From positions 176,364-240,363 of the IMG/VR virus record IMGVR_UViG_3300046003_007892: a stretch of 64,000 nucleotides of DNA. One strand, written 5' to 3'. Position 1 is the first letter of the stretch. The number at the start of each line of letters is the position of its first letter. Below the pieces are notes generated by a model. That model made no database searches. It had not been told where the DNA came from and saw nothing but the letters and a program-made list of their open reading frames with translations. The translations under genes and the position numbers were made by a program. Below, piece by piece: positions 3,508 to 64,000 of this stretch.

Positions 3508-3537
3508 CCCATCTGATCTAAGAAAGGTCCCTTGAAC

Positions 3538-4701: not shown

Positions 4702-4713
4702 GGGAAACCCAGA

Positions 4714-5466: not shown

Positions 5467-5543
5467 TTCACCCTGCCGGGGGCGGGCAGCCGCCCCCGGT
5501 TCCTTCTCTGCTCAAAGAGTGCATTTCTAGAAAAGGGGCCCAA

Positions 5544-15540: not shown

Positions 15541-15935
15541 GCTTTCTAAGTGGCTCGCCTCCATACAAATATAGCGAAAGACGAGAACGCCCGGAGACCA
15601 GCGAGGTTGAAGACCTTCAGCGCGTCGTCCGAGACATGCAGCGTTTGATCGACAGCCAGGAAATCTTGCTCGTCAAGTATCGAGAAACCGAAACCGAACG
15701 GGCTAGTTTGATTCTTCAGTATTCCGAAGCACACGAAAACTACATGCTCATCCAGCATGCCGTCGAGCAAGACGAGAACGTAAAGGATGCTTGGTTGAAG
15801 TTCATCTCGGCCGTGAAACTCGTCACCGACGACGGAGCAATAGGGGTCACTCATGGCGCCGCAAAACCGTTTTGGACTTTCGGTGCCCCAAAGAAAATCT
15901 ACGACCCCCAGACCGCGATTGGAAAACTGAAGTGA
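15537..15935 (+). CDS. Coiled-coil protein with W..F...KL motif
   Basis: GGAGG RBS, ATGA overlap; [18 protein letters not shown]. Confidence 0.65.
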
Positions 15936-15937
15936 GA

Positions 15938-24824: not shown

Positions 24825-26504
<1,680 letters not shown>

Positions 26505-42144: not shown

Positions 42145-42174
42145 TTTTCCCCAACCCAATCAAGTAGTGTGGGG

Positions 42175-42532: not shown

Positions 42533-43011
42533 TTAAACTCATCGCCTATTGGCAGATGATCGGTGGTCTGTGGTGGCTGTCTGCGCCGATGTTTGGCGCA
42601 GCATCCCTGATCGCGCATGACAAAGGGTTCGATGTGGCCCCGGCGTTGGCTGTCGCATCCATCATGTCGTTCATCTCCCTATTTGTGAGCTACATCACCC
42701 ACAGCGAGGCCCGAGACGAGTTCGAGGATGAGAAGCGTTTCTATAAGCGCGCCATTGAAGAAAAAATCGAAAAGGTCAAGCGGGCGCATGAGCACATGAT
42801 TCGCCAGCAACAGGACATCATCAACGCTGATGAAAAGAAGAAGAAGAAAAACAAGAACAAGAACTTGATCGCCGAAGCGGCGAAAGGCGAAATGATCTAC
42901 GACCCCGATACTGGGGAGGAACTCGGCCGTCTCGACATCGCCGCTCTCGAACGGGATTTCTTCGCGGAGCCGGGCTCCCATTTCTATGGACCGTGGCGTC
43001 TGGACAAGTAA
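42529..43011 (+). CDS. Membrane protein with two TM helices and coiled coil
   Basis: ATGA overlap; hydrophobic N-half. Confidence 0.6.
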   Translation: MIKLIAYWQMIGGLWWLSAPMFGAASLIAHDKGFDVAPALAVASIMSFISLFVSYITHSEARDEFEDEKRFYKRAIEEKIEKVKRAHEHMIRQQQDIINADEKKKKKNKNKNLIAEAAKGEMIYDPDTGEELGRLDIAALERDFFAEPGSHFYGPWRLDK

Positions 43012-43014
43012 ATA
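43009..43014 (+). promoter_or_regulatory. Putative late promoter TAAATA
   Basis: 4 nt before ATG 43019. Confidence 0.6.
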
Positions 43015-43018
43015 CGTG

Positions 43019-43678
43019 ATGGAATACGCACACGTTCTCGAACTCGACCCCCAGACCCAGAAGGTAGCACTCGACCAGTTCGCCAAGCTGGCCGATGCCC
43101 AGCGCGGCGTTCCCGAAAACATGGGCGGAGGTGGGCCGTCTTCGATCAACCCCGCCAAGACGCATGCCTCCGGCCTTTGGCATCACGCTACTGAGCATAT
43201 CGGCGATCTCACCCACCGTATGGCCCAGCGCAACTGTGAACGGTGGGCCTTCGGCTATGAGTGGGTGGACCAGAAGGTGGTGGTTCAACTCCGGTCTCTG
43301 CGCTCCCGCTACGGCTACGAGAAAGAGGTCATGGAGAACCTCCGCAACAATCACCGATACTACAAGTCCCCCATGCCCTTCGAGCAGTGGGTCAAAGAAT
43401 GGGAAGAGGCTGGGGATAATTTCGCGCGCGCCCACAGGGCCCTCACGGTCTGGAACATCGCGCAGTACCATGCCCGCGAGGCCGCCATCGCCATCGGTGA
43501 GCGCAAATACGAGAAGACCATCAAGCACCTGTCGGAGCTTGAACAGCGTCTCGACACCGAGGAGAACTGGATTCGATACGCGGGTGGGTGCTGTCTGACC
43601 CCGGACGGTCTCGTCACCATGTACTCTCGCGGCATCCAGGAGTCCGCCTACGTGGACCGTCTGCTCAAGTCTCTCTAG
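43019..43678 (+). CDS. Putative virion-internal helical protein (EHxGDLxHR domain)
   Basis: Leader MEYAHVLE; homologous to middle domain of the 60026 protein. Confidence 0.7.
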   Translation: MEYAHVLELDPQTQKVALDQFAKLADAQRGVPENMGGGGPSSINPAKTHASGLWHHATEHIGDLTHRMAQRNCERWAFGYEWVDQKVVVQLRSLRSRYGYEKEVMENLRNNHRYYKSPMPFEQWVKEWEEAGDNFARAHRALTVWNIAQYHAREAAIAIGERKYEKTIKHLSELEQRLDTEENWIRYAGGCCLTPDGLVTMYSRGIQESAYVDRLLKSL

Positions 43679-46045: not shown

Positions 46046-46363
46046 CTACGCTTCGTCGTTGCCCTCAGAGAGCTTGAGCATCATGCAGAACCGTTCCCAG
46101 TCGGACTGCAAGGCGTGGTCGCGTTTGATCGCATCCATGAGGGTGTCGAAATCTTTCCCCATCTTGATGTATTTGCCCACCAGAGCCACGGCACCCGGAC
46201 CTCCATCGCTCGGCAGTTGAAGGCCTTTCGCCCGCAGAGCAATAATTGCGGCGCGGCCGATGTCAGCCAGCCCATCTAGGGCTTCGGCGCGGGCCCGATA
46301 GCCCTGTGCCTGAATGAGTTGAGCTTTGAGATCGGCGATGATTTGGTCGGCGGTATCAGCCAT
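46046..46363 (-). CDS. Coiled-coil protein with W..F...KL motif
   Basis: KRDHALQSDWERFCMMLKL. Confidence 0.65.
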   Translation of the reverse strand: MADTADQIIADLKAQLIQAQGYRARAEALDGLADIGRAAIIALRAKGLQLPSDGGPGAVALVGKYIKMGKDFDTLMDAIKRDHALQSDWERFCMMLKLSEGNDEA

Positions 46364-46868
46364 TTGGTCCTTGGTTGGCTAGCATTCCGGCGAGGCTCTT
46401 CTCTGCATCCTGCTGTCGCTGGCGCATGAGGTCTTCGTGGGAATGGTAGCTCTGTTGGTTTTGAAGTTTCAGAGCCCGGCAGACGGGCTTGTAGCGGGTG
46501 ATCATGTCCATTTTGACGCCCGTATCGGTATTGAACAGGACGTCCATCCCCTGCCCGTGCAGGACCGTCTCGTCGCTTTTCTCCCAGTAGTCGAACGAAG
46601 AGAAATCAGAGCCGGTGTCGGCAATCAGGCATTTCGCGGCAGTCTCGGCGAACGCCGGACCAACCTCACCCATCTCAATCAAGTCGTCGAGGACGAAATC
46701 ATGCTGCTGGCTCGCATTGCCGGACCAGACGATGAGCTTCGACGGTCCAGCCCAGCCGCGAAGGTCGTGCTTCTTGACCAACTCGGTGAGTTCCCAATGC
46801 GAGGGGTTGACCCACAGCTTGGCGTCGGGGAGTTGGATGACCTGAACTTCGCGGATGATTTCTTTCAT
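46356..46868 (-). CDS. Putative virion-internal protein, NP..LR..VW module
   Basis: Leader MKEIIRE; WVNPSHWEL...DLRGW...LIVWSG. Confidence 0.65.
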   Translation of the reverse strand: MKEIIREVQVIQLPDAKLWVNPSHWELTELVKKHDLRGWAGPSKLIVWSGNASQQHDFVLDDLIEMGEVGPAFAETAAKCLIADTGSDFSSFDYWEKSDETVLHGQGMDVLFNTDTGVKMDMITRYKPVCRALKLQNQQSYHSHEDLMRQRQQDAEKSLAGMLANQGPNG

Positions 46869-50920: not shown

Positions 50921-50948
50921 AAGATACACCACGTCAGTTTCTTGTCAA
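50921..50948 (-). promoter_or_regulatory. Sigma70-type early promoter
   Basis: Minus strand TTGACA-N16-TATCTT. Confidence 0.7.
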
Positions 50949-53236
50949 GTAAATGATTGCTCTTTTTCGCGCTTCTTCGATTTCGCACGAGCGGAGGACT
51001 TGGCGAACGTCATTCCGTCCACGAACTTGATGCGGTATTTGGAATGCAGATCGTTTTCCTCAATGAGGCGGTCCACAATCGCCATGGCCTCGAAGCTATA
51101 CCGGTAGCGGCTCACCAGCATGGAATTCAAGGTTCCGTCTTTCCACGCCCCGTAGTGGGCTTCAACGTCTTTGTCCCGAAGGAGCAAGAGACTGGAGCCA
51201 CGCGGAATTTTCAGGGACGGGGAGTTGACCAGCCATTCGGATTCATCGTTGAAAACTTTCGAGAGTCTCGCGAGCGCGTCCACCAGAGCGACCTGAATGT
51301 CTTCGACGCGCAGTTCGGTCTCGAAGTCCTGCGTGGACCAGTTGTTCCACTCTTTTGCCGCCGCCAGGAGGCTCTGGTAGAGGGCCTGGGAGAACTCCTG
51401 CGGGCTGTTCGGGCGGAAGCCCAAACGGTCGAACTCGTCTCCGGCCTTCCAGCCCAGATTGTTGTATTCGATGGCGTGGGCGACGTTGGGGTTGATCGAT
51501 TTCATGGTCGGCGTCATGTAACCGACGATGTTGTTGATCATGCCCGTGCGACCAAGCTTGGTCTCGGGGTCCTTCGCCCAGATGCGATAGATGGCGCGGA
51601 GGTTGTCGGCGCAGAGATAGTTGGGGTCATCGTAGGCGACCTTCTCGATCTTGTTAGCAGCGAACACAGCCTTGGGGTCCATGACGAGGCAGCAGTTGCC
51701 CGACGTATGGAAGAAGTTGAGCATGATCTGACGGCTGTCCGAGATGCCCTTGACGCCGTGGAGTTCCATGTTGGCGATGTCTTGAAGAGCCCGCATGCTT
51801 TGCTCGTGTTCGCGGTCGCTGGTCGGCAGGCGAGTGACGAGCCAGAACTTGGTCGGGTCGGTATTTTCGACCAAAGTCTTCTGACTTTCTTCGACCTCTT
51901 CTCGTCCGCGAATCATGCGCAGGAAAGAGGTGGTCTTCATCATTCTCTCAAGGCCCTGGCCCGAGGCCGTGAGGGCGTATCCTTCGAAGTTGATCAGCGA
52001 GCCGCCGCGCCAGTCGGTCCCTGCAATGTGGGGCTCGTGTGAGACGGGGAGGAAGATGTGGAAGCGGGTCGGGTAGTGATCATACGAAATCCCCAGTGCC
52101 TTCATGACGTTGAGGTGGATGTCCGCAGACGCTTGCCACACATAGGTGTTCTCGCCATCCGATACGCCTCGGAGATCGTCGCCTCGGTCCATCATGGCCA
52201 GCACTTCCGCCTTGCGGGGGTTCACGGTCACCTTGACGCCTTCGGCCCATTCGATGCGGCCTTCTGAGAGGTAGCCAGGACGCTTGCCTCCCAGCATGCA
52301 GATTTGCTCGCTCGCGCCTTCCTGGCGGGCTAGAGCGGTATAGAAGGCCGGGTTGGCGATGAAGGTGCCTTCGCCGCCGTAGATGGCCTCGGGGAGCATT
52401 GAGAGGGTCTCGTCGAGGAGGGTCGGACCCAGGAGTTCGGGAACCACCATACCGGAGCATCGGGCGAGATCGGCCGTCTCCGGGGTGACGTAGCCCCAGA
52501 GGGGGAGTTGCTGACTGGCGGTCTCGAACCCACGGAGGACCATCTCGGGCTTACCAACGGCGGCCATAACCTTGAACATCCCGCTGCCCTGCATGCGGGT
52601 CGCGAGGTATCCGGTCTTGTCGCCGTAGAAAGTCCAGTTGCGGGCTCGGCTCTCGAACTTGGCAGCCGTCCAGTCACCGAACACCCGATGGGCTTCCTTG
52701 ACCCCGATGGCGTTCGGGCCCGACGACGCACCTTCGAGGATGGCGTTCGTGCGCAGCTTTTTCTCTTTGGTCTTGTGCTTGCCCGTGGAGGGTTCGGCGA
52801 AAATCTCTGGCCCGAGCAGGATTTTGCCCCGGTAGGGTTCGATGCTTTCGATGTCGAGCTTGGAGCCGTTGTAGGTGATCGTGACGTGCGAGTTGTAGTC
52901 ATCAAACTTCCACGCGGCGCCGTGATCGAGAAAATCCTGCCAACGGGAGTTGAGGTGATCGTTCTGGATGGTGAGCACAATCGCGCCGCCATCGAACTCA
53001 ACGATCTCGCGCTTGTCTGCGTTCTTGACGCTAACTTCTTCTTTGCCCTTGCCGCATTCAGACCAGACTACTGGGTCCGCCGAATGGCAAACAGTGACGT
53101 GGAGGTTGGACATGACAGTCCTCATACCCTGCTCTTCTGCCCACTCTTCAATATCGGCAATGTTCAACACTTTCCTCTTTACATAAAGGGGTCGTGCTTT
53201 TGCTAGTTTCGAGGAGGCAAGTTCATCTAGTCGCAT
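50945..53236 (-). CDS. Multidomain protein: N-terminal Acb1/T4 gp57B-like 2H phosphoesterase, GNAT-like module, NP..LR..YVW module, possible ART-like C-terminal module
   Basis: Start MRLDEL (763 aa); PLYV.RKV, HVTVCHS, GA.WKFDDYNSHVTITYN, LGPEIFAE = two HxT motifs. Confidence 0.8.
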   Translation of the reverse strand: MRLDELASSKLAKARPLYVKRKVLNIADIEEWAEEQGMRTVMSNLHVTVCHSADPVVWSECGKGKEEVSVKNADKREIVEFDGGAIVLTIQNDHLNSRWQDFLDHGAAWKFDDYNSHVTITYNGSKLDIESIEPYRGKILLGPEIFAEPSTGKHKTKEKKLRTNAILEGASSGPNAIGVKEAHRVFGDWTAAKFESRARNWTFYGDKTGYLATRMQGSGMFKVMAAVGKPEMVLRGFETASQQLPLWGYVTPETADLARCSGMVVPELLGPTLLDETLSMLPEAIYGGEGTFIANPAFYTALARQEGASEQICMLGGKRPGYLSEGRIEWAEGVKVTVNPRKAEVLAMMDRGDDLRGVSDGENTYVWQASADIHLNVMKALGISYDHYPTRFHIFLPVSHEPHIAGTDWRGGSLINFEGYALTASGQGLERMMKTTSFLRMIRGREEVEESQKTLVENTDPTKFWLVTRLPTSDREHEQSMRALQDIANMELHGVKGISDSRQIMLNFFHTSGNCCLVMDPKAVFAANKIEKVAYDDPNYLCADNLRAIYRIWAKDPETKLGRTGMINNIVGYMTPTMKSINPNVAHAIEYNNLGWKAGDEFDRLGFRPNSPQEFSQALYQSLLAAAKEWNNWSTQDFETELRVEDIQVALVDALARLSKVFNDESEWLVNSPSLKIPRGSSLLLLRDKDVEAHYGAWKDGTLNSMLVSRYRYSFEAMAIVDRLIEENDLHSKYRIKFVDGMTFAKSSARAKSKKREKEQSFT

Positions 53237-53261
53237 TGGTTCCACTATACAGGGGTCGGGG

Positions 53262-53267
53262 TATTTA
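53262..53267 (-). promoter_or_regulatory. Putative late promoter TAAATA
   Basis: 25 nt upstream of ATG 53236. Confidence 0.55.
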
Positions 53268-53330
53268 TGACCAATTACCTGTGGGATATTTTGGTTGACC
53301 AAAGCCCGCCATTGCTGCATATGCGGGCCA

Positions 53331-53648
53331 ATGCGCCCCATATTTCTCGACGACATCCGCGTGCCGCGATCATCTCCGCCATCGGGCTGGTGGGTGGTCC
53401 TCCGCGATGCTCAGATGACGAAGGACTACATCCTCGAACACGGATGCCCGGACCACATCTCGTTCGACCATGACCTCGGAGACCCTAAGGCCGAGACCGG
53501 CTATGACGTGGCGAAATGGCTCGTCGAGATGGACCTCGATAAGCCCGGCTTCCTCCCAGAGAATTTCACGTTCGCCGTCCACAGCGCGAACCCCGTGGGC
53601 GCCAAGAACATCCGCGAATATCTGACCGCCTACCTGGGTGTCCGATGA
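53331..53648 (+). CDS. Cyclic-phosphate-processing receiver (cREC) domain protein
   Basis: IFLDDIR.P, ISFDHDLG, TGYDVAKWL, VHSANPVG..NI. Confidence 0.8.
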   Translation: MRPIFLDDIRVPRSSPPSGWWVVLRDAQMTKDYILEHGCPDHISFDHDLGDPKAETGYDVAKWLVEMDLDKPGFLPENFTFAVHSANPVGAKNIREYLTAYLGVR

Positions 53649-53959
53649 GCGATCAAATCCGAGATTTCAGAACCAACTCGGAAATGCCGTGGTATCTCTT
53701 CTCCGAGCATGAGCCGGAGATCGGGCAAATGATCTGGATACTCGTCGAGGAGGATACCTGCGACGACGAGTCCTATCCCGACATCCGCAAAGTGGTCGCG
53801 AAGATCATCTCCGACGAGAACGGCGATCACTGGGTCTTCGAACTCCTGGACTGGGACGTAGACATCGACGGTCCCGGCCACCGGGGCGCGGGCTATCTCA
53901 ATGGCAACTGGCACACCGTCAAGGCATGGCGGGCAATGACCATCACGGGTGACGTATGA
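53645..53959 (+). CDS. Hypothetical protein
   Basis: ATGA overlap. Confidence 0.6.
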   Translation: MSDQIRDFRTNSEMPWYLFSEHEPEIGQMIWILVEEDTCDDESYPDIRKVVAKIISDENGDHWVFELLDWDVDIDGPGHRGAGYLNGNWHTVKAWRAMTITGDV

Positions 53960-54339
53960 CGCAATATTCGGGACGAACCACCGCCTCTGTGCACAAGTTC
54001 GATGACTGGGCCGAAAAGGACGTCAGCGGCGTCGCACCGGCAATTCGCCAAATCTATCTGTTCGAAGTTCAGTGGAGCGATTGCCCGGTGGAAGTCGAAA
54101 CAGAAGTCAAGAAGCTCTGGCGATGGCAAGAACTCGGCAACGATTTCTATTATTTCTCGTGGGACCGCGACGCCGACGCCTACATTGGCGAAGACGAACT
54201 CCGCGACGGCGGGAGGACGGCGAACCCTATCGGGGGCGTGATCGGCGAAGACTCAAAACTTCACCTCGTCTTCCCGATGATCGACGAGTACCTGATGAGC
54301 AAGGGCGTCGAGAAATGCCTCATTCACTGGTGGTGGTAA
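53956..54339 (+). CDS. Hypothetical protein
   Basis: ATGA overlap; ends CLIHWWW. Confidence 0.65.
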   Translation: MTQYSGRTTASVHKFDDWAEKDVSGVAPAIRQIYLFEVQWSDCPVEVETEVKKLWRWQELGNDFYYFSWDRDADAYIGEDELRDGGRTANPIGGVIGEDSKLHLVFPMIDEYLMSKGVEKCLIHWWW

Positions 54340-54340
54340 G

Positions 54341-54679
54341 ATGTTCTGGAAAAAGAAAAAGGTCACCGAGATCACTGCACCGGTTCCCGATGAACCCCGC
54401 GTCCGCACCGTCGTGTTCGATGCCGACACGTTGGAGCGCGCCTATCGCGATGTGAAGCATGTCGGGTTCTCGCGCTCAGTGATGAACTCCGACAACGTCC
54501 TGGCTCTCCTCATGCTGGCCAGAATGGGGCTCGAAACAGTGCCGGGGAAAGTCTTCACGCTGTCGATCACGACCGGCGCGGCCAGTCTGGATTCTCTGGC
54601 CGACGTGGCTGGGGTGCCCCAGATGCGTCCGGCAACTCCTTCAGAGGTGTTCGAAGAATTGCACCCGCCGCTCAGTTAG
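54341..54679 (+). CDS. Hypothetical protein
   Basis: Abuts upstream stop. Confidence 0.55.
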   Translation: MFWKKKKVTEITAPVPDEPRVRTVVFDADTLERAYRDVKHVGFSRSVMNSDNVLALLMLARMGLETVPGKVFTLSITTGAASLDSLADVAGVPQMRPATPSEVFEELHPPLS

Positions 54680-55257
54680 GGGAACCGCTGCACCCAGCGT
54701 TCACCAGCCGCGATCACCGCCATCGTTTCGGCGTCGTTTGGAAGGGCTTCACGAACGCATTCGCAGTAGCGGGCGAAACCTGCTCGGTCGATCATCAGGC
54801 CCGTGATGTAGCGGTCCAGGTTGTTCACGTCGCCGAAGACGCATTCTTCGAGTTCGTCATCCCCGTCGCCAAAATCCACCATTTCGAGACCATCGCTGTG
54901 GAAGCATACGGAAAAGAACTCGTAGTCTCGGTGTAGGGCTTGTCGGTTGAACTCCATGACTACGCCTTGGCCACCAGCAATCATTTCTGCTTTGTGGGAT
55001 ACGAGTTCGTGATCTTCCTCGAACTTGGTGTAATCGAAATCGCTATACTGGGATAGCTGGCCCCGCCGAGCGAGATCAATTGCGCTCCCGCAGAAACGCT
55101 TCGCGACCTCGGGGTCGAGGGTGAAGCTAGCTTGGTCTTCGCCGCCGTAGGCGCCAATCATGTTGTGATGTGCAATGAAGCAGAACCCCGTCATGGACGT
55201 CCCGTGATAGAGATGCGCCGGACGCTGTGATTCCGTCAGATTCATCCACTCGCGCAT
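54676..55257 (-). CDS. ADP-ribosyltransferase-fold protein
   Basis: Leader MREWMNLTE; LYHGTS, SFTLDPEVAKRF, GVVMEF, DELEECV. Confidence 0.65.
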   Translation of the reverse strand: MREWMNLTESQRPAHLYHGTSMTGFCFIAHHNMIGAYGGEDQASFTLDPEVAKRFCGSAIDLARRGQLSQYSDFDYTKFEEDHELVSHKAEMIAGGQGVVMEFNRQALHRDYEFFSVCFHSDGLEMVDFGDGDDELEECVFGDVNNLDRYITGLMIDRAGFARYCECVREALPNDAETMAVIAAGERWVQRFP

Positions 55258-55258
55258 G

Positions 55259-55582
55259 TTAGCCCACAGTCTTCCTGATCGCGCGGTTCTCAGCCATGGC
55301 GATGGCCTCGGCCTTGCGGAGCAACAGGAGATCGAGGCCAAGCGACTTGAACTCTTCCTTGATGTCGCCCTGGAGGGTCAACCAGTCGTCGCCAACGCGC
55401 TTCATGATGGCGGTTCCGGCCGGGCGCCGGTTGTAGAAGACCGTGTAGGCGATGTTGTCTCCAACGCGCTCTTCTTCGATATTCACGAGCTTCATATCCG
55501 CAGAGACGTCTTCGTCAATCTGCTGGACGGGGAGTTTGAGCGTGGGGTCGATGCGCTTGTAGTGTTCGAGGAAGCTGGGCAT
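55259..55582 (-). CDS. Hypothetical protein, GNAT-like fragment
   Basis: Leader MPSFLE; IKEEFKSLGL..LL...AE. Confidence 0.6.
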   Translation of the reverse strand: MPSFLEHYKRIDPTLKLPVQQIDEDVSADMKLVNIEEERVGDNIAYTVFYNRRPAGTAIMKRVGDDWLTLQGDIKEEFKSLGLDLLLLRKAEAIAMAENRAIRKTVG

Positions 55583-55586
55583 GGCT

Positions 55587-55592
55587 TATTTA
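55587..55592 (-). promoter_or_regulatory. Putative late promoter TAAATA
   Basis: 4 nt before ATG 55582. Confidence 0.6.
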
Positions 55593-55868
55593 TGCCAGAC
55601 GAAGCTTCCATTCGAAAAAACACGCCTGTGCACGGACGAGATCGCTTGCTTGGGTGAAGTGCCAGGGTCGCCCTATTCCTCGCATGACTGACCAGCCGGG
55701 ACCGAATACGGCGTCGGACGTGGTGCCGTGGTGAACCCAAACTCCGATCTCGTCCATTACCGCTCGTCCATCAATGATATAGCGATGGATGGCACGGCTA
55801 GGCCGCGTGATCTTCACCCACTCACGCAGGATTTCGAGGTTCTCCGGCGTGAGTGGGTGTTCGGTCAC
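55590..55868 (-). CDS. Hypothetical protein
   Basis: GTGA overlap with cca stop; start VTEHPL. Confidence 0.5.
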   Translation of the reverse strand: MTEHPLTPENLEILREWVKITRPSRAIHRYIIDGRAVMDEIGVWVHHGTTSDAVFGPGWSVMRGIGRPWHFTQASDLVRAQACFFEWKLRLA

Positions 55869-57100
55869 AGGCCCTGTTTGGCCAGCAGGCCGTTCAGGAA
55901 GTCGTTGGTGCGGTTCATGTCGAACCAGACCTTGACCCATTCTTCTTCGGTCGCGCGCAGGATGTCGCCCATGGCCTTGCCGGGCTTCATGCCACGGTCG
56001 ATCAGCATCGCCCCCGAGATCGGGAACACGCGGGGAGCCAGACGGCCCACCTTGTTGATCTGATCGGCCAGCGTATCGAAATCGAACGGCAGGCCACAGG
56101 CCCAGGTCAGGGCCATGCGGTCACGAACGGCCACGACGCCATCGCGGTAGATGTGCTGCTCGATGCTGTCGAACCACGCGTCTCCGCCCATCTCGGTGAA
56201 CGGTCCCTGCTTGATCGCGTTGGTGACCCGCTGACGCGAGGCGTTCGAGAACCGCAGGCGAGCCATGACGTCCCCGCAGGCCTGCATATCCCAGTTGAAC
56301 AGGGAGGCGAAGCGGGGGGCCCAGTCGGTCGTGGCTTGACAGACGCGGGTGAACACACGGGCGTCAAACGCGACCGGGAAGATGGTCGAGTAGACCTCGG
56401 TGCGCTGCATGGCCTCCAGAGCGGGGACGGGGTTGCCCGCGCCCAGCAGCTTGGAGATTTCCTTCTCGATGCGTTCGCCGGACAGGCTCGCGATTCCGTC
56501 CCGTTGCGCCTTGCAGGCGGCCAGGGCTTCGGCGGAGATGTCCGCACCCAGAACCGCCATGAAGCGGAACAGGCGCAGGCTGCGCAGGTGATCTTCGCGC
56601 AGACGCTGCTCGGCGTCGCCGACGAACTGGATACGACGGGCCTTGGCGTCTTCAATGCCGCCGCGCGTCGGGTCATAGACGGTTCCGTCCGGGCCCAGAT
56701 ACAGGGCGTTGAAGCGGAAGTCGCGACGTTGCGCGTCTTCGGCCCAGTCCTTCGTAAAGGCGATCACGGCGCGGCGGCCATCGGTCTCGACGTCGCGGCG
56801 CAGCGTCGTGAACTCGTAGGCGGTCTTGTTGATGATGACCGAGACCGTGCCGTGCTCGATGCCCGTGGGGATGACATCGAAACCTTCCAAGCGGAAGATG
56901 TCCGAGATCAGCGTGGGTTCCAGAGTGGTGGCGATGTCGATGTCGCCGCACTGGCGGCCCATGATGGAGTCACGCACGCACCCGCCGACGAAGCGGTAGG
57001 AATCCGCAGGCGCATGCACATCCATGATCGCGATGATCGATTGGATGGCCGGGGTCGAGAACCAATCCGGGCGCAGGGTCAGGGTCTTCGGCGTGCTCAT
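55865..57100 (-). CDS. cca: CCA tRNA nucleotidyltransferase (class II)
   Basis: FVGGCVRD, DIDIATT, GIEHGTV, EFTTLRRDVETDGRRA, DAQRRDFRFNALY, EDHLR.LR.FRF, SGERI..E..KLL. Confidence 0.92.
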   Translation of the reverse strand: MSTPKTLTLRPDWFSTPAIQSIIAIMDVHAPADSYRFVGGCVRDSIMGRQCGDIDIATTLEPTLISDIFRLEGFDVIPTGIEHGTVSVIINKTAYEFTTLRRDVETDGRRAVIAFTKDWAEDAQRRDFRFNALYLGPDGTVYDPTRGGIEDAKARRIQFVGDAEQRLREDHLRSLRLFRFMAVLGADISAEALAACKAQRDGIASLSGERIEKEISKLLGAGNPVPALEAMQRTEVYSTIFPVAFDARVFTRVCQATTDWAPRFASLFNWDMQACGDVMARLRFSNASRQRVTNAIKQGPFTEMGGDAWFDSIEQHIYRDGVVAVRDRMALTWACGLPFDFDTLADQINKVGRLAPRVFPISGAMLIDRGMKPGKAMGDILRATEEEWVKVWFDMNRTNDFLNGLLAKQGL

Positions 57101-57166
57101 CCCGTGTGTCTATTTGCCAGCACTGTTTTTGTCAAGGAAATTGATCTCGATGAACTGCTGTGGTAG

Positions 57167-57577
57167 ATGTATCTAATGGCCAAATCAGAATACGTTCTCC
57201 GCATCGAAGAGCAATACGGCGCGACCCACATCGCCTATATGGAGGTGAACGGGCGCGACATGGACGTCTTCTATCAGCCCAACCCCAAGACCGAACTCGG
57301 TCACTCGAACTATTTCGGCATTCTCATGCAGGGTTCGAGCTTGATGATCACTCAAGCGCGTCGTGTCCAGGATGAAACATACCCGGCCATCATCATCGAC
57401 AACACGCTGATGACCACCCTTCGGAATCATGACTTTCAGATGCACGCCAGTGGTGCCATGCTTGATGGCGGCCCCGGCTATGGACGCATCAATCCCGATT
57501 TCGCCCCCGATGGCGTTCTCCGGGTCGTGGGCGACAAACTCGCCTTCGTCGGCCGGGTCAAGCCAGACCCTAAATGA
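57167..57577 (+). CDS. Hypothetical phage protein
   Basis: DVFYQPNP...GHSNYFGI, LDGG.GY. Confidence 0.65.
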   Translation: MYLMAKSEYVLRIEEQYGATHIAYMEVNGRDMDVFYQPNPKTELGHSNYFGILMQGSSLMITQARRVQDETYPAIIIDNTLMTTLRNHDFQMHASGAMLDGGPGYGRINPDFAPDGVLRVVGDKLAFVGRVKPDPK

Positions 57578-57632
57578 CTCGTGGGCAACAAGCTCGTCTT
57601 CGTTGGACGCATCAAACCAGACCCCAAATGAC
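57525..57632 (+). repeat. 54-bp tandem duplication spanning a stop/start junction
   Basis: 57525-57578 vs 57579-57632, 9 mismatches. Confidence 0.85.
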
Positions 57633-58008
57633 CGCAGCAGCAAATGACCCTCGTATCTGTGAAGGCCGCAGTCGGTACTGGTGGTCGGGCTATGATGATC
57701 GCATGCGGGCGAAGCCTTACTCCATCCAGACTACTGGCTCGGATTGGCGGGCTGGGTGGGCGACTGCCGACCACTCACACAACGACATCGGCATCATGGA
57801 AGGGGTTGACTGCTTCCTGGTCAACATCCCCGATCTCAAAGACGTGCATGTCCTAAACGAGGTCGTAGAATGGATGAAAGCGAGGGGCGTTGAAACGCCA
57901 CCTCGCTCGTATGAACTTTGCTTGACTCGTGGGCGGGCGGGTCAACTGACGGTTTTTGCTCTTCCGACCTACGAACTCGCCTTCGAGTTTTTCGCCACGT
58001 TCGGCTAA
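57628..58008 (+). CDS. Hypothetical protein (start 57628 or 57574)
   Basis: ATGA overlaps; ends FALPTYELAFEFFATFG. Confidence 0.6.
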   Translation: MTAAANDPRICEGRSRYWWSGYDDRMRAKPYSIQTTGSDWRAGWATADHSHNDIGIMEGVDCFLVNIPDLKDVHVLNEVVEWMKARGVETPPRSYELCLTRGRAGQLTVFALPTYELAFEFFATFG

Positions 58009-58392
58009 TTAGTTGTCGTAGGGGTCGATGCCGTTCCACAGGTGATTGCCATAGGAATCGCCTGCGTTGTCCTGACCGTCTTCGCGATGAGTGATCGGGA
58101 TGCCCATACGGTCGGTTCCAGAATAACCGGAATGCCCATCGTCGCTATAGGCGGAGCCGACTGCACCCAGGCCGGGGTTCGAGATACCGGCGTTTTCCAG
58201 AGCCGCAACGGCGACGTTGTAAAGACCCAGAGCGGCGGCGGCATAGAGGAACAGCTTGGCGAGTTTGTTTTTCCCGCCGCTTTCTGCGAGAATTTTGTCC
58301 ATCGCCTCTGCGAGGAGGTCTTTCGACTTCGACTTGGATTTTGACTCCACGAGAGGCGTTTTGGCCTCGATGATGTCGATCAAATTTCTCAT
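58009..58392 (-). CDS. Small protein with LxE leader and hydrophobic helix
   Basis: MRNLIDIIE..PLVE..LLAE; AAAGGA RBS. Confidence 0.65.
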   Translation of the reverse strand: MRNLIDIIEAKTPLVESKSKSKSKDLLAEAMDKILAESGGKNKLAKLFLYAAAALGLYNVAVAALENAGISNPGLGAVGSAYSDDGHSGYSGTDRMGIPITHREDGQDNAGDSYGNHLWNGIDPYDN

Positions 58393-58417
58393 AACAGTGA
58401 TCCTTTAGGTTTTGATT

Positions 58418-58423
58418 TATTTA
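58418..58423 (-). promoter_or_regulatory. Putative late promoter TAAATA
   Basis: 25 nt upstream of ATG 58392. Confidence 0.5.
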
Positions 58424-58495
58424 TCTTTTCGCCAACGAAACGACGACGACAATCTCGTCAACCAAAAGAAAAATCGAAATGACGCATTTTTCGTA

Positions 58496-58524
58496 TTGCG
58501 TTCGTTGGGGCCGATGCGTAGAAA
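58496..58524 (+). promoter_or_regulatory. Putative promoter of large ncRNA copy 1
   Basis: TTGCGT-N17-TAGAAA, mirrored at 59559. Confidence 0.5.
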
Positions 58525-58530
58525 GAGATT

Positions 58531-58923
58531 GTTCCGGCGGCGGACGGCTTCGGCCCCCTCCCCAACGAGGTCATCGAAAGGCTTCCTCGTTGCACGCGAA
58601 CCTCGCTACTGACCGGCTTCGGCCGCCATCAGATCACGGTGAGGCCAGCACGGAGCGCGACCTACTGTGCTTCGGCATTACTGGTCGTATTCAGAACGGT
58701 CGCTCCGTTCTGGGTTCCGGTATACTCGCGCCGTAAGTGGTGAGTGGGCCAAGACAGGGCTCGACTGGTTTGAGACCAGCTTCTGGGGTTGAGAACACCC
58801 TGACCTGATGCGATAACCTCGCGAAGGTGAACAGACTCCGGCCTCTTTCTAGGGCCGCTGACATCGCCCAGCAAGGCATGCCCAGTTAAGGGCCGGAAGA
58901 CCTGAACCATCTTCCGGCCCTTA
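58531..58923 (+). ncRNA. Candidate large structured ncRNA, copy 1 (~390 nt)
   Basis: Three cUUCGg hairpins, multiple 5-8 bp stems, 14-bp terminal hairpin, homology to 59594-60002, no credible ORF. Confidence 0.65.
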
Positions 58924-58966
58924 GATTTATTTGGGGTCTGGTTTTGCTGTCTGGTATAACGGCGGC

Positions 58967-59176
58967 ATGATCACCAAGACCCTAGACGGCACACCGCTCA
59001 GCGAAGAAGCCGCACAGAAACTCGCGATGTTCAAGGCCATGGCGCAGGCCCGTCAGGACGCCATGGAGGAAGCCGAGCAGAATCGCTCGCGGCTCGACCG
59101 GAAAGGCGTGCGGGTCTTCACTGAAGCCGAGAAAGCAGCCTTCCTGGCGTCGCGCCCGGACCTCAAAGCCTCATAG
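58967..59176 (+). CDS. Small hypothetical protein, probably leaderless
   Basis: TATAAC 6 nt before ATG (MITKTLDG). Confidence 0.6.
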   Translation: MITKTLDGTPLSEEAAQKLAMFKAMAQARQDAMEEAEQNRSRLDRKGVRVFTEAEKAAFLASRPDLKAS

Positions 59177-59486
59177 TAAAATATTCCAAACAGCATTCCG
59201 TCCAACCATCGGCGTCCGGGATGTCTACCTGCATCACGCCGACGAGGTCGTAGATCGATATCGTGATATCAAACTTTGACTGGTCAGCGGGGAACGCCAC
59301 GCCTCGTAGAAATACGTTTGGATATGTTCGCCCACCAACGTGGTAAACGATTCGTGTCGGCTCGACTTTCCGATCTAGGGCGTAATCCATGGCAACCGCC
59401 CACAGGGGTCGGTCATCGACAGGGACTCGCAACGCCTCGACGCGGCAACTGGGGGCGTGGCGGAGTTCAGGCGTCATCGTTTTCAT
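59163..59486 (-). CDS. Hypothetical protein
   Basis: Start MKTMTPEL; TATAAAT upstream. Confidence 0.5.
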   Translation of the reverse strand: MKTMTPELRHAPSCRVEALRVPVDDRPLWAVAMDYALDRKVEPTRIVYHVGGRTYPNVFLRGVAFPADQSKFDITISIYDLVGVMQVDIPDADGWTECCLEYFTMRL

Positions 59487-59558
59487 CTCTAGGCTGGGCT
59501 GACATTTATACCCCAAATCGTCAACCCAAACAAAAATCGAAATCGCTGCATTTTCTTG

Positions 59559-59587
59559 TTGCGGCCCTCGGAGGAGATGGGTAGAAA
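59559..59587 (+). promoter_or_regulatory. Putative promoter of large ncRNA copy 2
   Basis: TTGCGG-N17-TAGAAA. Confidence 0.5.
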
Positions 59588-59593
59588 GAGATT

Positions 59594-60002
59594 GTTCCGG
59601 CAGCGGACGGCTTCGGCCCCCGCCGCCACGGAGAAACCCGAAAGGGCCAACACGAAGAAGGAAGGGGTTCGCCCCAACCCGAAGGAACTAAAGGACAGCG
59701 GATAACACCCGATGGCCTCAAGGACTGGAATACCGAAGTGACGAGAACGGCCCTCGAAACCGTTCGCAAGACCCTGGTCTCAAGTCACGTAGGATACGGT
59801 CTAATCCGAGGGCTCACATCGTAAAGTGGGCAGGCTCAGCTAGGGCCGATATACCGGTTTGAACCCCGGCTAGCTAGGGCCAGAAGCCCCTACCGTCTCA
59901 CGACGGAAATCACCTTCTAGGCCTCTTGCTTAGGCCTTATGTGACGCGAACGCGTCGCCCACATATTAAGGGCCCGTGGACATGATTAGCCACGGGCCCT
60001 TA
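59594..60002 (+). ncRNA. Candidate large structured ncRNA, copy 2 (~410 nt)
   Basis: UUCG and GAAA tetraloop hairpins, 13-bp terminal hairpin, homology to 58531-58923, no credible ORF. Confidence 0.65.
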
Positions 60003-60015
60003 GCTTGTCTGGGCC

Positions 60016-60021
60016 TAAATA
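60016..60021 (+). promoter_or_regulatory. Putative late promoter TAAATA
   Basis: 4 nt before ATG 60026. Confidence 0.6.
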
Positions 60022-60025
60022 TGAG

Positions 60026-61531
60026 ATGCGTCGGTTCATCGATCTCTCTGAGAAATTCCACCACGGCTTCGTCCCGACCTACAATCGCGGTAAGCCCTGC
60101 GAGGTGTTCAAGAACCCCGACCGGTCTGAGGTCCGCAAGCTGAAGGCCGATATGGATGAGGTTCGCGCCTATCTGGTTGGCGACGACATCTTTATGTGGA
60201 ACACCTATCAGTCCCTGCACCGCACGGTGCACGACGAACTCAAGCTTCCTGCTGACGCTCTCCCGATCATCATCTACGGCGACGTGGACGACGAGGCCTC
60301 GGTTGTGGTCACCGACGCGAGTAGGTCCACGGTCTGGCACCATAATGCCGAGACGCGTGGAGCCATCATGGCCCATCCCTACTTTGCCCGCTGCGAAGAC
60401 GTCGAAGTCTCTTACTATGACGAAGCCATCGTCGGACAATGGCATGACCCCAAAGGCGAGAACGAGGATTTCGTTGCTCATTTCATGGGTGATGAATACG
60501 GCGACGACAGTATCGACCATGGTGCCGAAGACCCCGACGACGATGGCTTCACCGACGAAGAGCGGGCCCTGCACGAGGGCATGGCCCTGAACCTCTTTGA
60601 ACTCTCGGGCCCGTCTCAAGAAGCAGCTAATCAGAAATTCGCCGCCTATGCGAAGAGCCAACGAAACGGCAAGCCCGAACTCTTCGGCACGTCACAGCGG
60701 GCCAACCCAGGCCTCTTTCACGGCACCGGCTATTTCACCTGGATGTGTGAGCACGTCGGTGATCTCTCCCACCGCATCGCCGACAACGCCGTCAACTCCA
60801 CCTGCGGGTTCGAGACCATGAACGAGAAAGTCGGGAAGGCTCTCGACAAGCTCCGCTCAGGCTCCTTCGGCCGCACGTTCGCGAGGACGGTAGTGGAAAA
60901 TGTTCGAAACAATTATCATTACGGAGTTGAGGTCGGTCGCACGACCGGCTCCTTCGAGGAGTTCGAGACCGAGTGGCGCGACGCCTCCAAGCTCTATGGC
61001 GCCGCACACGCTGCCCTCCAGCCCTTCAACGATGCCCAGATGCATTGTCGGGATGCGGCGGTCGCGCTCGGGAACCATGACTGGCTGAAATGCCTGAAGC
61101 ATCTCGAAGTCCTCGCGGCCCACCTCGTAGATCGCGAATCCTGGCAGGCCTACGCTGGGGCCTTGGCCTTCACTCAAAATGAGAGCTTTCGCGGACGTCT
61201 GCCATTCGACCCCGAAGACGCAGTGACGAACCCGAGCGCGAAACGTCTGATGGCCATGGTGAAGAATGCCACCCATCAGGATTTGCGCGGCCTCTACGAC
61301 GGAACCAACCTGTATTTCTGGGACGCCAGCCTTGGCGTTCACTCCCACGTCGCCCCGGCGATTGGTCTCGAATACGATTATCTCAAGAGGCTCAACGTCG
61401 ATATCGTTTACGGCGGCGTGGAGATCACATGGGACGAGGGTGTGCCCAAGGAGGCCATCGCGAAACGATACGGTGACCTGGGTCGATTCAAGACCGCCCA
61501 GACCTTCGAGTTCGAGGGTGCCCTGTCATGA
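60026..61531 (+). CDS. Modular putative virion-internal protein (A-B-A architecture)
   Basis: Leader MRRFIDLSE; two NP..LR..YFW modules flanking an EHVGDLSHR module. Confidence 0.75.
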   Translation: MRRFIDLSEKFHHGFVPTYNRGKPCEVFKNPDRSEVRKLKADMDEVRAYLVGDDIFMWNTYQSLHRTVHDELKLPADALPIIIYGDVDDEASVVVTDASRSTVWHHNAETRGAIMAHPYFARCEDVEVSYYDEAIVGQWHDPKGENEDFVAHFMGDEYGDDSIDHGAEDPDDDGFTDEERALHEGMALNLFELSGPSQEAANQKFAAYAKSQRNGKPELFGTSQRANPGLFHGTGYFTWMCEHVGDLSHRIADNAVNSTCGFETMNEKVGKALDKLRSGSFGRTFARTVVENVRNNYHYGVEVGRTTGSFEEFETEWRDASKLYGAAHAALQPFNDAQMHCRDAAVALGNHDWLKCLKHLEVLAAHLVDRESWQAYAGALAFTQNESFRGRLPFDPEDAVTNPSAKRLMAMVKNATHQDLRGLYDGTNLYFWDASLGVHSHVAPAIGLEYDYLKRLNVDIVYGGVEITWDEGVPKEAIAKRYGDLGRFKTAQTFEFEGALS

Positions 61532-61944
61532 GGCTTGCAGAGATCATGGAGCGGGCTGGCCCTCAGACCTACATTCGTTTCGGGGATATCCCGGCTAGCG
61601 GCCGATCTGGCATCGGTGCCTCGACGAACCAGTTCACGCATGCCCGGAGACGCGGTGACGAAGAACTAGGGGTGTCCGTCTACCCGGCTCGCTTCGACCG
61701 AGAGCTTCAGAAATGGATTCTGGACTGCAACAACTACGCGACGCTGGGCGAACTCGTCTCCCGTGAGCGACCCGCCTTCGTCGTGACTGGCGATCACGTC
61801 ATCGACCCCGATTATGAAGCCCCCGCTTACGGACAGGACAGCGAGCCCCTGTTGACCAATGTCCGGGTTCTCCGACCGGTCACCTACCAGGAAATCATCG
61901 CACCCGGCTGGGGCGAGACCTCAACCATAGACGAAATGGTCTAG
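61528..61944 (+). CDS. YIRFG/GVS/EPLL domain protein
   Basis: Leader MRLAEIME; ATGA overlap; homologous to C-half of 62654. Confidence 0.7.
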   Translation: MRLAEIMERAGPQTYIRFGDIPASGRSGIGASTNQFTHARRRGDEELGVSVYPARFDRELQKWILDCNNYATLGELVSRERPAFVVTGDHVIDPDYEAPAYGQDSEPLLTNVRVLRPVTYQEIIAPGWGETSTIDEMV

Positions 61945-62378
61945 AGGTAAGCCGCTTGATCTTCGCGGTGGATGGCGAAGCGTTCTCCCCACGACAGCCG
62001 GAACAGCATCCGGTCGGCGGCAGTGCCGAACACCATGAAACCGATGCGGGACCGGAAGTTAAGCTCCCACGTGCCCGAGATATTCTCGCTCAACCATATT
62101 CTCAGTTCCTGCCGGGGGACCAGTTTCTTTTCCCAGTTGACCGCCCAATAGCGCGCAGGAACCCAGACCTCGTGTTCGGCCAGTTGGTCGATCTCGTCGG
62201 TATAGGGTCCGGCTGGCATGGGGGCTCCGAGGAAAATGTCGCTGCGACCGGGTCTGGAGTTTTCAAGGGCAAGGCCCTCCCTGTTGTGAACGGCCTCCTG
62301 GCAGAGGCGATCACCGAGACGCTTACGGCGTTCCAAACCAGGGCTTTGCCAGTCCCTCGTTCTTCCCGCCACGTCCAC
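61941..62378 (-). CDS. Hypothetical protein (F...D..LF.L.WG family; start uncertain)
   Basis: Ends MVFGTAADRMLFRLSWG; upstream TTGACA-N16-TACAAG (62394-62421). Confidence 0.55.
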   Translation of the reverse strand: MDVAGRTRDWQSPGLERRKRLGDRLCQEAVHNREGLALENSRPGRSDIFLGAPMPAGPYTDEIDQLAEHEVWVPARYWAVNWEKKLVPRQELRIWLSENISGTWELNFRSRIGFMVFGTAADRMLFRLSWGERFAIHREDQAAYL

Positions 62379-62425
62379 CGCAGCAATGTCTTTCTTGTAA
62401 AGGAAATCGCGTGGCTGTCAAGCCT

Positions 62426-62587
62426 TTAGTGGATAGTCGCCGAGCAGGGCAGCATGATGAACTCGACGACGGACAGAGGACGACCAGGAACCACGGCGGG
62501 CGTCATGCCTGCGATGGAGGTCTCGATGTGAGCAGTGAGGACATCTCGCCAGTTGGCACCGAGGGGTTGGGGGCGTTCGTCTTTCAT
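62426..62587 (-). CDS. Small 53-aa hypothetical protein (below ORF-track cutoff)
   Basis: MKDERPQPLGANW..., AGGAG RBS, upstream TTGACG-N16-TACAAG (62612-62639). Confidence 0.5.
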   Translation of the reverse strand: MKDERPQPLGANWRDVLTAHIETSIAGMTPAVVPGRPLSVVEFIMLPCSATIH

Positions 62588-62643
62588 CGCAGTCTCCTGA
62601 ATTTCTCAATACTTGTAAAGCAAATGCAATAGCCGTCAAGGGA

Positions 62644-62649
62644 TAAATA
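62644..62649 (+). promoter_or_regulatory. Putative late promoter TAAATA
   Basis: 4 nt before ATG 62654. Confidence 0.6.
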
Positions 62650-62653
62650 TGCC

Positions 62654-63478
62654 ATGCGCGCCCACATCGATCTTGCAGCCAACATCCTGTTTGAAGACGC
62701 CGAAGACGATAAGCGTTCCTTCTGGCTCGAAATGCAGCCGCACTATCGCGGAACCGGAGATGCCCAATGGTCACCTTCGTTCACGTCCTGGCCACCTTCT
62801 CGCCAAGAACTCCTCTCCGCCGAGCGGCAGATCAACCAGCACCCAGAATGGATTGCCTACTGGGCTAAGTTCGGCTGGCGGTCATGGCAGGAAGCCGACA
62901 ACTACTACTACGACAAGCGAACACGCCGCGTCCGTTTCTACGATGTCCCCCACATCGCGAACATTCACGGAAAGTTTTCTCCAGATCGGGCATCCCTGGA
63001 GATCGACCTCGACGGAAACGTCCACGAGCGCGAATCCAAATACGCGCAGTTCTATATTCCGATGCCGTCCGCCATCCATGCCTGCATGGCAGTGGTGAAC
63101 AAGGTTCGGGCGAACCTCAAATATCTCGACGGGGAGTTCTACATTCGATTCGGCCGCTGGCGAGAGGGCGAGCAGTCTCGTAACGGCATCACGGGCGAAC
63201 TCGAAGCCGGAGTTTCGGCCTACCATGCCAACTACAATTTCGACGATGGTATGTGGGAGATCGACCCCACGGTCTCGGAAGAGTCGATCAACGGCACGAT
63301 GAACTCGTTCTTCTCCCGGCAGGACCAGAAAGTCTTCCTGGTTCAGGGACGGGAACTGGAGGAGTTGGGTTCGGATGATGAACCCCTCCTGAAGGACGTC
63401 CGTCTGATCAAGAAACTGACCATGCGCGACGTCTGCGTGCCGGGTATGTTCGACCCCGCTGATTTGTTTGACGTCTAA
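62654..63478 (+). CDS. Two-domain protein with C-terminal YIRFG/GVS/EPLL domain
   Basis: Leader MRAHIDLAANILFE. Confidence 0.7.
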   Translation: MRAHIDLAANILFEDAEDDKRSFWLEMQPHYRGTGDAQWSPSFTSWPPSRQELLSAERQINQHPEWIAYWAKFGWRSWQEADNYYYDKRTRRVRFYDVPHIANIHGKFSPDRASLEIDLDGNVHERESKYAQFYIPMPSAIHACMAVVNKVRANLKYLDGEFYIRFGRWREGEQSRNGITGELEAGVSAYHANYNFDDGMWEIDPTVSEESINGTMNSFFSRQDQKVFLVQGRELEELGSDDEPLLKDVRLIKKLTMRDVCVPGMFDPADLFDV

Positions 63479-63481
63479 ATA
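63476..63481 (+). promoter_or_regulatory. Putative late promoter TAAATA
   Basis: 4 nt before ATG 63486. Confidence 0.6.
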
Positions 63482-63485
63482 AGAG

Positions 63486-64000
63486 ATGCGAACTATCGAA
63501 CTTTTCGAAGCTCCCCTTGGACGGGTCCGTATCACCCGGACTCTCTCCGAAGACACGGCAGCGGCGCCGCCGCAGAAATGGCCCGCGCGTCTGGACGATT
63601 CGCGCATGATCGCCCGCTACATGGACAGCATCAGCAGCGACTACGTCGATGTCGATATGGTGGAGGAATACCTCCAAGGCGCACACGCCGATCTCAAGCT
63701 CGTCCCCATCGACGAACTCTCCGAGGGAAACCAGGACGCCAACATCCGAGACCCTCGCAAGGAAGCAAAATATTCGAAGCTCGATATGGCTACCATGCCG
63801 CCCCTGGTCGTACAGGACGGCGTCATCCTCGACGGTAATCACCGCTACCGTATAGCCAAAGCGAAGGGCGTCACCGCGCTGTGGTGCTATGTCTGCGACG
63901 ACTCCCTCACTGAGGTCGAGATTGGCGGCTACATCGAGAAGGGTGACTTTCCCGACAACCTCGACGACGACGATCTCTCCAGCGATCAGCTAGACCTGTC
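63486..64000 (+). CDS. ParB/sulfiredoxin-like domain protein, 3'-truncated (absent from ORF track)
   Basis: My translation: MRTIELFEAP...MPPLVVQDGVILDGNHRYRIAKAKG...LWCYV; open to window end. Confidence 0.75.
   Translation, partial: MRTIELFEAPLGRVRITRTLSEDTAAAPPQKWPARLDDSRMIARYMDSISSDYVDVDMVEEYLQGAHADLKLVPIDELSEGNQDANIRDPRKEAKYSKLDMATMPPLVVQDGVILDGNHRYRIAKAKGVTALWCYVCDDSLTEVEIGGYIEKGDFPDNLDDDDLSSDQLDL

Follow-up and report, generated by a model that had tools for sequence, protein, structure and literature searches.

A three-module A-B-A protein with a T4-like leader and a candidate internal prohead-protease site in an uncultured lake-water phage

The internal proteins found in T-even phages are anti-defence proteins that are unrelated to one another except for a common leader (PMC3012670). 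In T4 this leader, the capsid-targeting sequence (CTS), is MKTYQEFIAE (PMC8442874). These first 10 residues are enough to bring a protein into the core of the prohead, and L/I-X-E is the motif after which gp21 cuts; residues 4 and 7 of the CTS serve targeting and residues 8 and 10 serve cleavage (PMC9026906). Here we describe a gene of an uncultured phage from lake water whose product starts with a leader of this type and is composed of three modules of two families in the order A-B-A. The gene is found in a stretch of 64,000 nucleotides (nt), referred to as the window, which is the final 64 kb (positions 176,364 to 240,363) of the 240,363-bp IMG/VR record IMGVR_UViG_3300046003_007892. Positions are those of the window unless a genome position is given. 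We see an even chance that the gene is an in-frame fusion of a first unit (leader, module A1 and acidic tail) with a second unit (leader remnant ALHE, module B, linker and module A2), and that the product is made late, packed into the prohead, cut after E9 and E184, and injected.

The open reading frame (ORF) at positions 60026–61531 (+) encodes 501 amino acids (aa) plus the stop codon, as supported by the frame, the database gene call and indel-free coverage by independent assemblies. The open frame spans TTG 60005 to the stop at 61529–61531. ATG 60026 is the best start because it agrees with the database gene call (501 aa), opens with the leader MRRFIDLSE that is shared with paralogues, and has a CTAAATA box 4 nt upstream. 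The protein read from this ATG is P0010, and the longer reading from TTG 60005 is P0001. An earlier reading made from the sequence only had placed the start at 60016. This position lies inside the CTAAATA box (60015–60021, +) and has no start codon.

Neighbouring genes are tightly packed or overlapping, and one indel could fuse two of them, so that a lost stop or a frameshift between two genes, i.e., an assembly or sequencing artefact, might produce a fusion of this kind. This explanation is barely credible here. Both junctions are covered without an indel by contigs of four other lake-water runs or metagenomes, and one 17-kb lake-water contig covers the entire gene with 2 substitutions. The agreement of these independent assemblies across both junctions shows that the fusion is not an assembly artefact and exists in nature.

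The leader MRRFIDLSE (residues 1–9, positions 60026–60052) ends in L-S-E. Module A1 (residues 11–136, positions 60056–60433) is an alpha/beta domain with an NP...R...W...H motif. It is followed by the acidic tail of the A1 unit (residues 137–180, positions 60434–60565), which has low values in the predicted local distance difference test (pLDDT), and by ALHE (residues 181–184, positions 60566–60577). Module B (residues 186–382, positions 60581–61171) is all-helical, with EHVGDLSHR at residues 242–250 and NLFE at residues 189–192 (positions 60590–60601). TQNE (residues 383–386, positions 61172–61183) is in the disordered linker between B and module A2 (residues 387–501, positions 61184–61528). 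All of these features are on the plus strand. The sequence does contain the acidic stretch and each of the strings that the sequence-only reading had pointed out (ALHE-G, NLFE-L and TQNE-S), and acidic tails after A1-type modules are also common among free-standing homologues.

The A-B-A layout described in that reading is borne out. Module B and a stand-alone gene of the window have 36% identity over 198 aa (E 3e-32). Direct comparison of A1 and A2 by BLASTP detects no similarity, and their identity in the family alignment is 18%. However, a leave-out hidden Markov model (HMM) built from 8 other copies of the same genome matches both A1 (independent E-value 2e-7) and A2 (independent E-value 6e-12) in a search of 1374 ORFs. 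As both are found by the leave-out HMM and not by BLASTP, the layout is real and is visible only at the profile level. Module A represents a paralogous family with at least 10 copies on the 240-kb contig, and the NP...R...W...H core of the family extends over approximately 125 residues. Alignment of module B over 9 members, including P0001, shows 21 invariant columns (QR...EHxGDLxHR...K...H..L...N.A....R).

AlphaFold2 modeling shows a confident alpha/beta domain for A1, with a pLDDT of 90.8 and a predicted template modeling score (pTM) of 0.83, and a helical domain for B, with a pLDDT of 79.6 and a pTM of 0.83. The leader is outside the A1 fold (pLDDT 57). Fold searches with module A gave no PDB match (Foldseek best E 0.06; VIA-align best Z 3.8) and found only viral hypothetical proteins in the Atlas (TM 0.51–0.57). 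Those with module B gave no convincing fold (Foldseek best E 0.22) and no named Atlas cluster; the best VIA-align match, to ZnT membrane helices (Z 7.0), was rejected as being within helical-bundle noise. The A and B profiles found nothing credible among PDB sequences, and neither module has a Pfam family. A Pfam search with P0001 shows no match at E <= 1, and hence no catalogued polyvalent-protein domain and no peptidase domain. PHROGs gives no match for P0001, the stand-alone B gene and several A proteins, and Pfam likewise. Megablast of the ORF region against cultured phages gave no match.

Modules A and B are present alone and in varied combinations, which is direct evidence for the shuffling among leader-bearing genes that had been proposed, and a comparison across relatives shows that the architecture is not invariant. 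Module B is found alone with a leader in P0020–P0022 and in the window gene at positions 43019–43678 (+), which encodes 219 aa with the leader MEYAHVLE, has GTAAATA-N4 upstream, and has its start confirmed as ATG 43019. Module B is present as leader-B-A in P0011 and P0023, and behind other N-terminal regions in P0024, P0025 and gp47 of phage SCTP-2. Searched exhaustively by profile, 1.84 billion representatives include 1720 clusters that match module A at E <= 1e-3. These proteins are 116 to 3328 aa in length and have up to 12 copies each. Proteins with module A alone are approximately 140–170 aa and mostly leader-bearing, and A-A tandems also occur. The window has stand-alone A genes at positions 12438–12938 (+, leader MRYIDLILE), 13262–13777 (+, leader MRRNIDLAASLLE) and 46356–46868 (-).

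Module A is also fused to enzyme domains, namely Acb1 (window positions 50945–53356, P0086 and P0153), GNAT, NUDIX, ART-PolyVal and NTase; P0155 has module A with both ART-PolyVal and NTase. The ORF at 50945–53356 (-) is 803 aa and joins an Acb1 domain, an anti-CBASS phosphodiesterase (PF23474, E 9.7e-30), to module A at residues 364–454, as detected with the A profile. It has an ATAAATA box 25 nt before an internal ATG at 53236, and its sequence suggests a 763-aa product that starts with MRLDELASS from this ATG. P0003 is a second A - middle - A protein of this genome. By eye, the P0003 middle and the P0012 C-terminus appear GNAT-like; this is unconfirmed by Pfam and BLASTP and is not claimed. 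A related 6.8-kb contig has four consecutive leader genes with different module combinations.

The next gene, at positions 61528–61944 (+), has a start that overlaps the stop of the ORF and encodes 138 aa with the leader MRLAEIME and only one module, C (YIRFG...). Module C (YIRFG...EPLL.DVR) is common to this gene and the gene at 62654–63478 (E 1e-9). The latter (+) encodes 274 aa, with the leader MRAHIDLAANILFE and module C as its C-terminal half (residues 161–264), and has ATAAATA-N4 upstream. Module C was also spotted by eye at genome position 73961.

These combinations bear on whether A1, B and A2 represent one obligate folding unit, e.g., two A domains that clamp B in a fixed composite. 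An A - X - A order is found twice in the genome (P0001 and P0003), as such a composite might predict. However, B is found alone and as B-A, and A is found alone, as A-A, as enzyme-A and in arrays of up to 12 copies; A1 and B fold confidently on their own in the models, and the linkers between modules are disordered. We regard an obligate unit as very improbable.

P0010 has three [LI]xE sites, where 3.8 are expected, and none of them falls outside the leader and the A1/B junction. P0011 is a free-standing leader-B-A gene of 347 aa that is 49% identical. Its start, MRSFMQIIKE|NTGQSIFDLSG, is in exact register with ...RALHE|GMALNLFELSG of P0001. As IIKE|N is aligned with ALHE|G, ALHE is read as a remnant of the leader end of the downstream fusion partner. 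In the model of B both ALHE and TQNE are in segments with a pLDDT < 50. NLFE is in a structured block with a mean pLDDT of 86, its counterpart in P0011 is IFD, and it is probably part of the B fold. The Glu of TQNE is at -17 from the proline of the NP motif, which is the usual [LI]xE position, but its P3 residue is Gln.

The wider A family shows that an [LI]xE at this position is conserved. Here an internal copy of A is one located at least 80 residues from the N-terminus of its protein. An [LI]xE with its Glu between -27 and -10 from the NP proline precedes 185 of 276 internal copies (67%), compared to 52 +/- 6 of 276 (19%) in random windows of the same proteins. With one copy per protein, it is present in 73 of 110, where 20.8 +/- 4 are expected. 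Control motifs before internal copies are less common: [LI]xD in 29 of 275, [LI]xQ in 16 of 275 and [LI]xK in 67 of 275. Enrichment at P3 is 2.55-fold for L and 1.73-fold for I, with Q at 0.83-fold. There is no conservation further upstream of the internal [LI]xE; the part that is kept is a minimal cleavage motif and not the targeting part of a leader.

The sequence-only reading had proposed three xE-type sites at which the modules would be freed by the head protease. This is plausible at ALHE|G, which is derived from a leader end, is disordered, has a canonical L-x-E and agrees with the enrichment across the family. The case is weak for NLFE, which is modelled in the B fold and has IFD in the homologue, and for TQNE, where the Q at P3 is not enriched. 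ALHE|G, with cleavage after E184, is the best candidate for an internal site.

The main alternative is that the product is a single-chain multidomain cargo protein, in which only the leader is removed as in T4 IPI-III, A1-B-A2 is one polypeptide, and ALHE is a neutral fossil of the fusion. The T4 internal proteins are cleaved only once (PMC8442874), and some polyvalent proteins are delivered whole (PMC5512222). In addition, the B/A2 junction is without a canonical site, NLFE is, in the model, buried in the B fold, and the A - middle - A order of P0003 might hint at a functional A...A arrangement. However, [LI]xE is found at a fixed distance before two thirds of the internal A copies and in a set of 110 diverse proteins, and conservation of both the distance and the specificity for E and L/I implies selection rather than fossils. 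ALHE is also in a disordered, accessible stretch, and A and B occur as separate genes. We consider a single chain possible but unlikely.

Judged by its residues, MRRFIDLSE closely resembles the T4 CTS and ends in the gp21 motif L/I-x-E (L-S-E, residues 7–9). The pattern M-[RK]-x-[FYL]-[IL]-x-[LI]-x-E begins at least 25 ORFs of the contig, and the number is approximately 40 when ORFs found by their upstream box are added. The leaders of these approximately 40 genes are 9–10 aa in length. Leaders of paralogues include MKTYADILVE and MKTYFEIVAE, and the latter is identical to the T4 CTS at 7 of 10 positions. The leader is also present on translationally coupled genes that have no upstream box. 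A leader ORF starting MRDLIDLVE at genome positions 85371–86195 (-; L008:10371–11195) encodes an ART-PolyVal ADP-ribosyltransferase (E 1e-17), which represents a parallel to T4 Alt (PMC5512222). Several further leader ORFs continue with LYHGT or LYRGD motifs. At the end of the window a leader ORF starting MRTIELFE (63486–63998, +) runs off the sequence; by eye its DGNHR string is ParB/Srx-like, with no Pfam match. Strings similar to DGNHR follow module A in locus L021.

The box upstream of the ORF is one of many. Late promoters read TATAAATA in T4 and CTAAATA in T4-like cyanophages. The genome has 90 copies of TAAATA, where 39 are expected. An ATG that opens an ORF of at least 60 aa is found within 30 nt downstream in 58 of the 90 cases. 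A gap of exactly 4 nt separates TAAATA from the ATG in 31 cases, and a gap of 5 nt does so in 9, i.e., 40 ORFs in total. In the window, NTAAATA-N4-ATG is seen at 60015–60028, 43008–43021, 62643–62656 and 63475–63488. An N-terminal [LI]xE is found at 29 of 41 box-preceded ATG positions compared to 212 of 2494 other ATG positions (odds ratio 26, Fisher p 1e-21). The same box is also found 30 nt upstream of a 1370-aa tail-fibre-like ORF. Because the box resembles the late promoters of T4 and the cyanophages, "late" is a reasonable reading, and we infer a late-promoter-like element. The 4-nt spacing suggests a leaderless or nearly leaderless mRNA, and possibly a class of such late mRNAs in a giant phage of the T4 superfamily. 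Just upstream of the box of the ORF, positions 59970–59999 have a perfect 10-bp inverted repeat (GGGCCCGTGG-N10-CCACGGGCCC), which may terminate the preceding unit or act as a regulatory hairpin.

The same spacing raises a different explanation, i.e., that these are cytoplasmic late proteins and not virion cargo, and that their similar N-termini reflect a translation-start constraint of leaderless mRNAs or a common interaction helix. The TAAATA-N4-ATG arrangement may indeed constrain the first codons, and the contig is without head genes. However, the likeness to the T4 CTS reaches 7 of 10 residues and includes the L/I-x-E end, and the same E-specific motif recurs internally, far from start codons. 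The leader is present on coupled genes without a box, and a matching protease is found in relatives. We find this explanation improbable. The description of the ORF as late cargo has indirect support in the late-promoter-like box, the T4-CTS-like leader and the gp21-type protease of the cultured relatives that were searched; the approximately 40 leader-bearing genes may likewise be cargo genes.

The phage belongs to the Atu_ph07/Phosso/Rak2 group. The contig encodes a T4-type baseplate wedge protein and both subunits of topoisomerase II. The wedge protein is nearest to that of Sinorhizobium phage Phosso (43%) and Agrobacterium phage Atu_ph07 (40%), followed by the Rak2 group; the genomes are 469 kb (Phosso), 490 kb (Atu_ph07) and approximately 350 kb (Rak2-group matches). 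Peptidase_S77 (T4 gp21) is above the Pfam threshold in Phosso, Atu_ph07 and SCTP-2, and is also encoded by an IMG/VR phage of 160 kb that is complete and has an A-GNAT protein. The gp21-type proteases of Phosso, Atu_ph07 and SCTP-2 start with the short N-termini MANFLTE, MSTKLTE and MQNQVLRE, respectively. These end in L-x-E like the LIE-9 site of T4 gp21 (PMC9026906).

In the proposed mechanism the gene would be transcribed late from the CTAAATA box, and the leader would act like the T4 CTS and deliver its protein to the core of the prohead. A gp21-type prohead protease specific for L/I-x-E would remove the leader after E9. The same protease would most likely cut after E184 and produce A1 with its acidic tail (~175 aa) and B-A2 (~317 aa); an additional cut at TQNE386|S is doubtful. 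The pieces would remain in the head, enter the host with the DNA and act early, probably against host defence or for takeover. The late transcription, packaging, cleavage and ejection, and the actions of A and B, are predictions from these sequence properties.

Several results weigh against this reading, in addition to the single cut of the T4 internal proteins and the properties of the B/A2 junction given above. On the 240-kb contig PF03420 has no match and tblastn with the proteases of four relatives found nothing. There is no major capsid gene on the contig; PF07068 gives only sub-threshold matches and there is no clear gp23. As the contig is 45% complete by CheckV and without a protease gene, the protease is deduced from relatives only, and the head module is presumably in the missing part of the genome. 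The A profile does not find module A in Atu_ph07, Phosso or SCTP-2, the three genomes that were searched. Finally, an A-bearing phage, IMGVR_UViG_3300029288_000067, is without an S77 match and has a different leader. The sequence of this phage (L022) is 224 kb and 90% complete, and the leader is MI[QK]KYS[QS]L. The leader string AIKKYSQL is found inside a 385-aa protein, which represents a second case of an internal leader copy.

Tblastn with P0001 against cultured phages found module B in SCTP-2 only, and tblastn with two other A proteins gave no match in cultured phages. The homologue P0012 is encoded on NCBI sequence JBINOA010003469.1 (L016), which is 1,136,180 bp in length. The surrounding 21 kb are phage-like, with dense small genes, ART-PolyVal, a class I tRNA synthetase and a D12 methyltransferase, and the sequence may belong to a very large phage or be a mixed contig. 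In the window, adjacent ORFs at 33845–38017 and 38032–42159 (both -) encode 1390 and 1375 aa with weak tail-fibre matches, and the translation of the latter is built of an approximately 120-aa repeat. Positions 3532–6626, 15791–16930 and 24825–26453 have a tellurite-resistance-like gene, a membrane protein, thymidylate synthase and a GroEL chaperonin. Scans for tRNAs and Rfam families in window positions 53000–64000 found none.

The fusion of module A to Acb1, ART, GNAT, NUDIX and NTase singles out A and B as candidates for anti-defence or takeover functions, and proteins that are injected together with the DNA act before phage gene expression, which makes them prime candidates for counter-defence. 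From this context, the company of module A and the diversification of the paralogues point to host takeover or counter-defence. T4 has a few injected proteins, whereas the lake phage seemingly has dozens, which are recognizable from sequence by leader and promoter box. Should cleavage really occur at the junction motifs, a leader together with [LI]xE would predict the injected proteome of uncultured giant phages and would also delimit the functional units of injected proteins. If the L/I-x-E edges are functional, the prohead protease would be the releasing enzyme for modules. A broader proposal, which we offer tentatively and with somewhat less than even confidence, is that the prohead protease of giant T4-superfamily phages also serves generally to process an injected arsenal. 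Shuffled modules would keep an N-terminal L/I-x-E, fused genes would be polyproteins that are dismantled in the head, and module A would represent both the most common unit and a new class of injected effectors.

The closest described systems are the T4 proteins IPI, IPII, IPIII and Alt. These also have a leader of approximately 10 residues that ends in L/I-x-E, and a diverse cargo with only the leader in common (PMC3012670, PMC9026906, PMC8442874). Late expression, which is predicted here, membership in the T4 superfamily and a leader-bearing ART like Alt are further similarities. T4, however, has a handful of leader genes compared to approximately 40 in less than half a genome here, and the lake phage differs from it by shuffled and fused modules, by the leader-end motif at internal junctions and by the 4-nt distance between box and ATG.

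Polyvalent proteins (Iyer, Burroughs, Anand, de Souza, Aravind 2017; PMC5512222) are likewise multidomain, domain-shuffled and predicted to be injected together with DNA, and module A co-occurs with their ART-PolyVal, GNAT, NUDIX and NTase domains. P0001 differs in that it lacks an embedded peptidase and, by Pfam, any of the 131 domains catalogued for this class (PMC5512222). It has three modules of two families, neither of which matches a known activity by Pfam, PHROGs or fold. Here the prohead protease is predicted to act in trans at [LI]xE for release, with targeting by a T4-type leader.

The inner-body and ejection proteins of phiKZ, 201phi2-1 and SPN3US are also numerous paralogous head-internal proteins of giant phages. 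A diverged homologue of gp21 (gp175/gp245-type) cleaves them after the Glu of short motifs, sometimes at several sites per protein (PMC9026906, PMC10052503). These phages belong to another lineage, and their cleavage logo is unlike the T4 L/I-X-E (PMC9026906). The proteins have no sequence in common with A or B and lack a conserved N-terminal leader of 10 residues.

Gp47 of Salicola phage SCTP-2 is the only protein of a cultured phage with module B (23% identity, E 5e-5). Its N-terminus, MKVKQITE, is leader-like, B is preceded by an acidic linker that contains INE|D, and the phage encodes Peptidase_S77. It differs in that B follows an HExxH-containing region (seen by eye, with no Pfam peptidase match) and that SCTP-2 has no module A. 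A literature search on the capsid-targeting sequence with anti-defence, jumbo phages and the prohead protease found no description of an arrangement like that of the lake phage. Compared to these systems, the number of leader genes (approximately 40 in half a genome), the close spacing of promoter box and ATG, two large domain families that are uncatalogued and the conserved L/I-x-E at internal module edges appear to be new.

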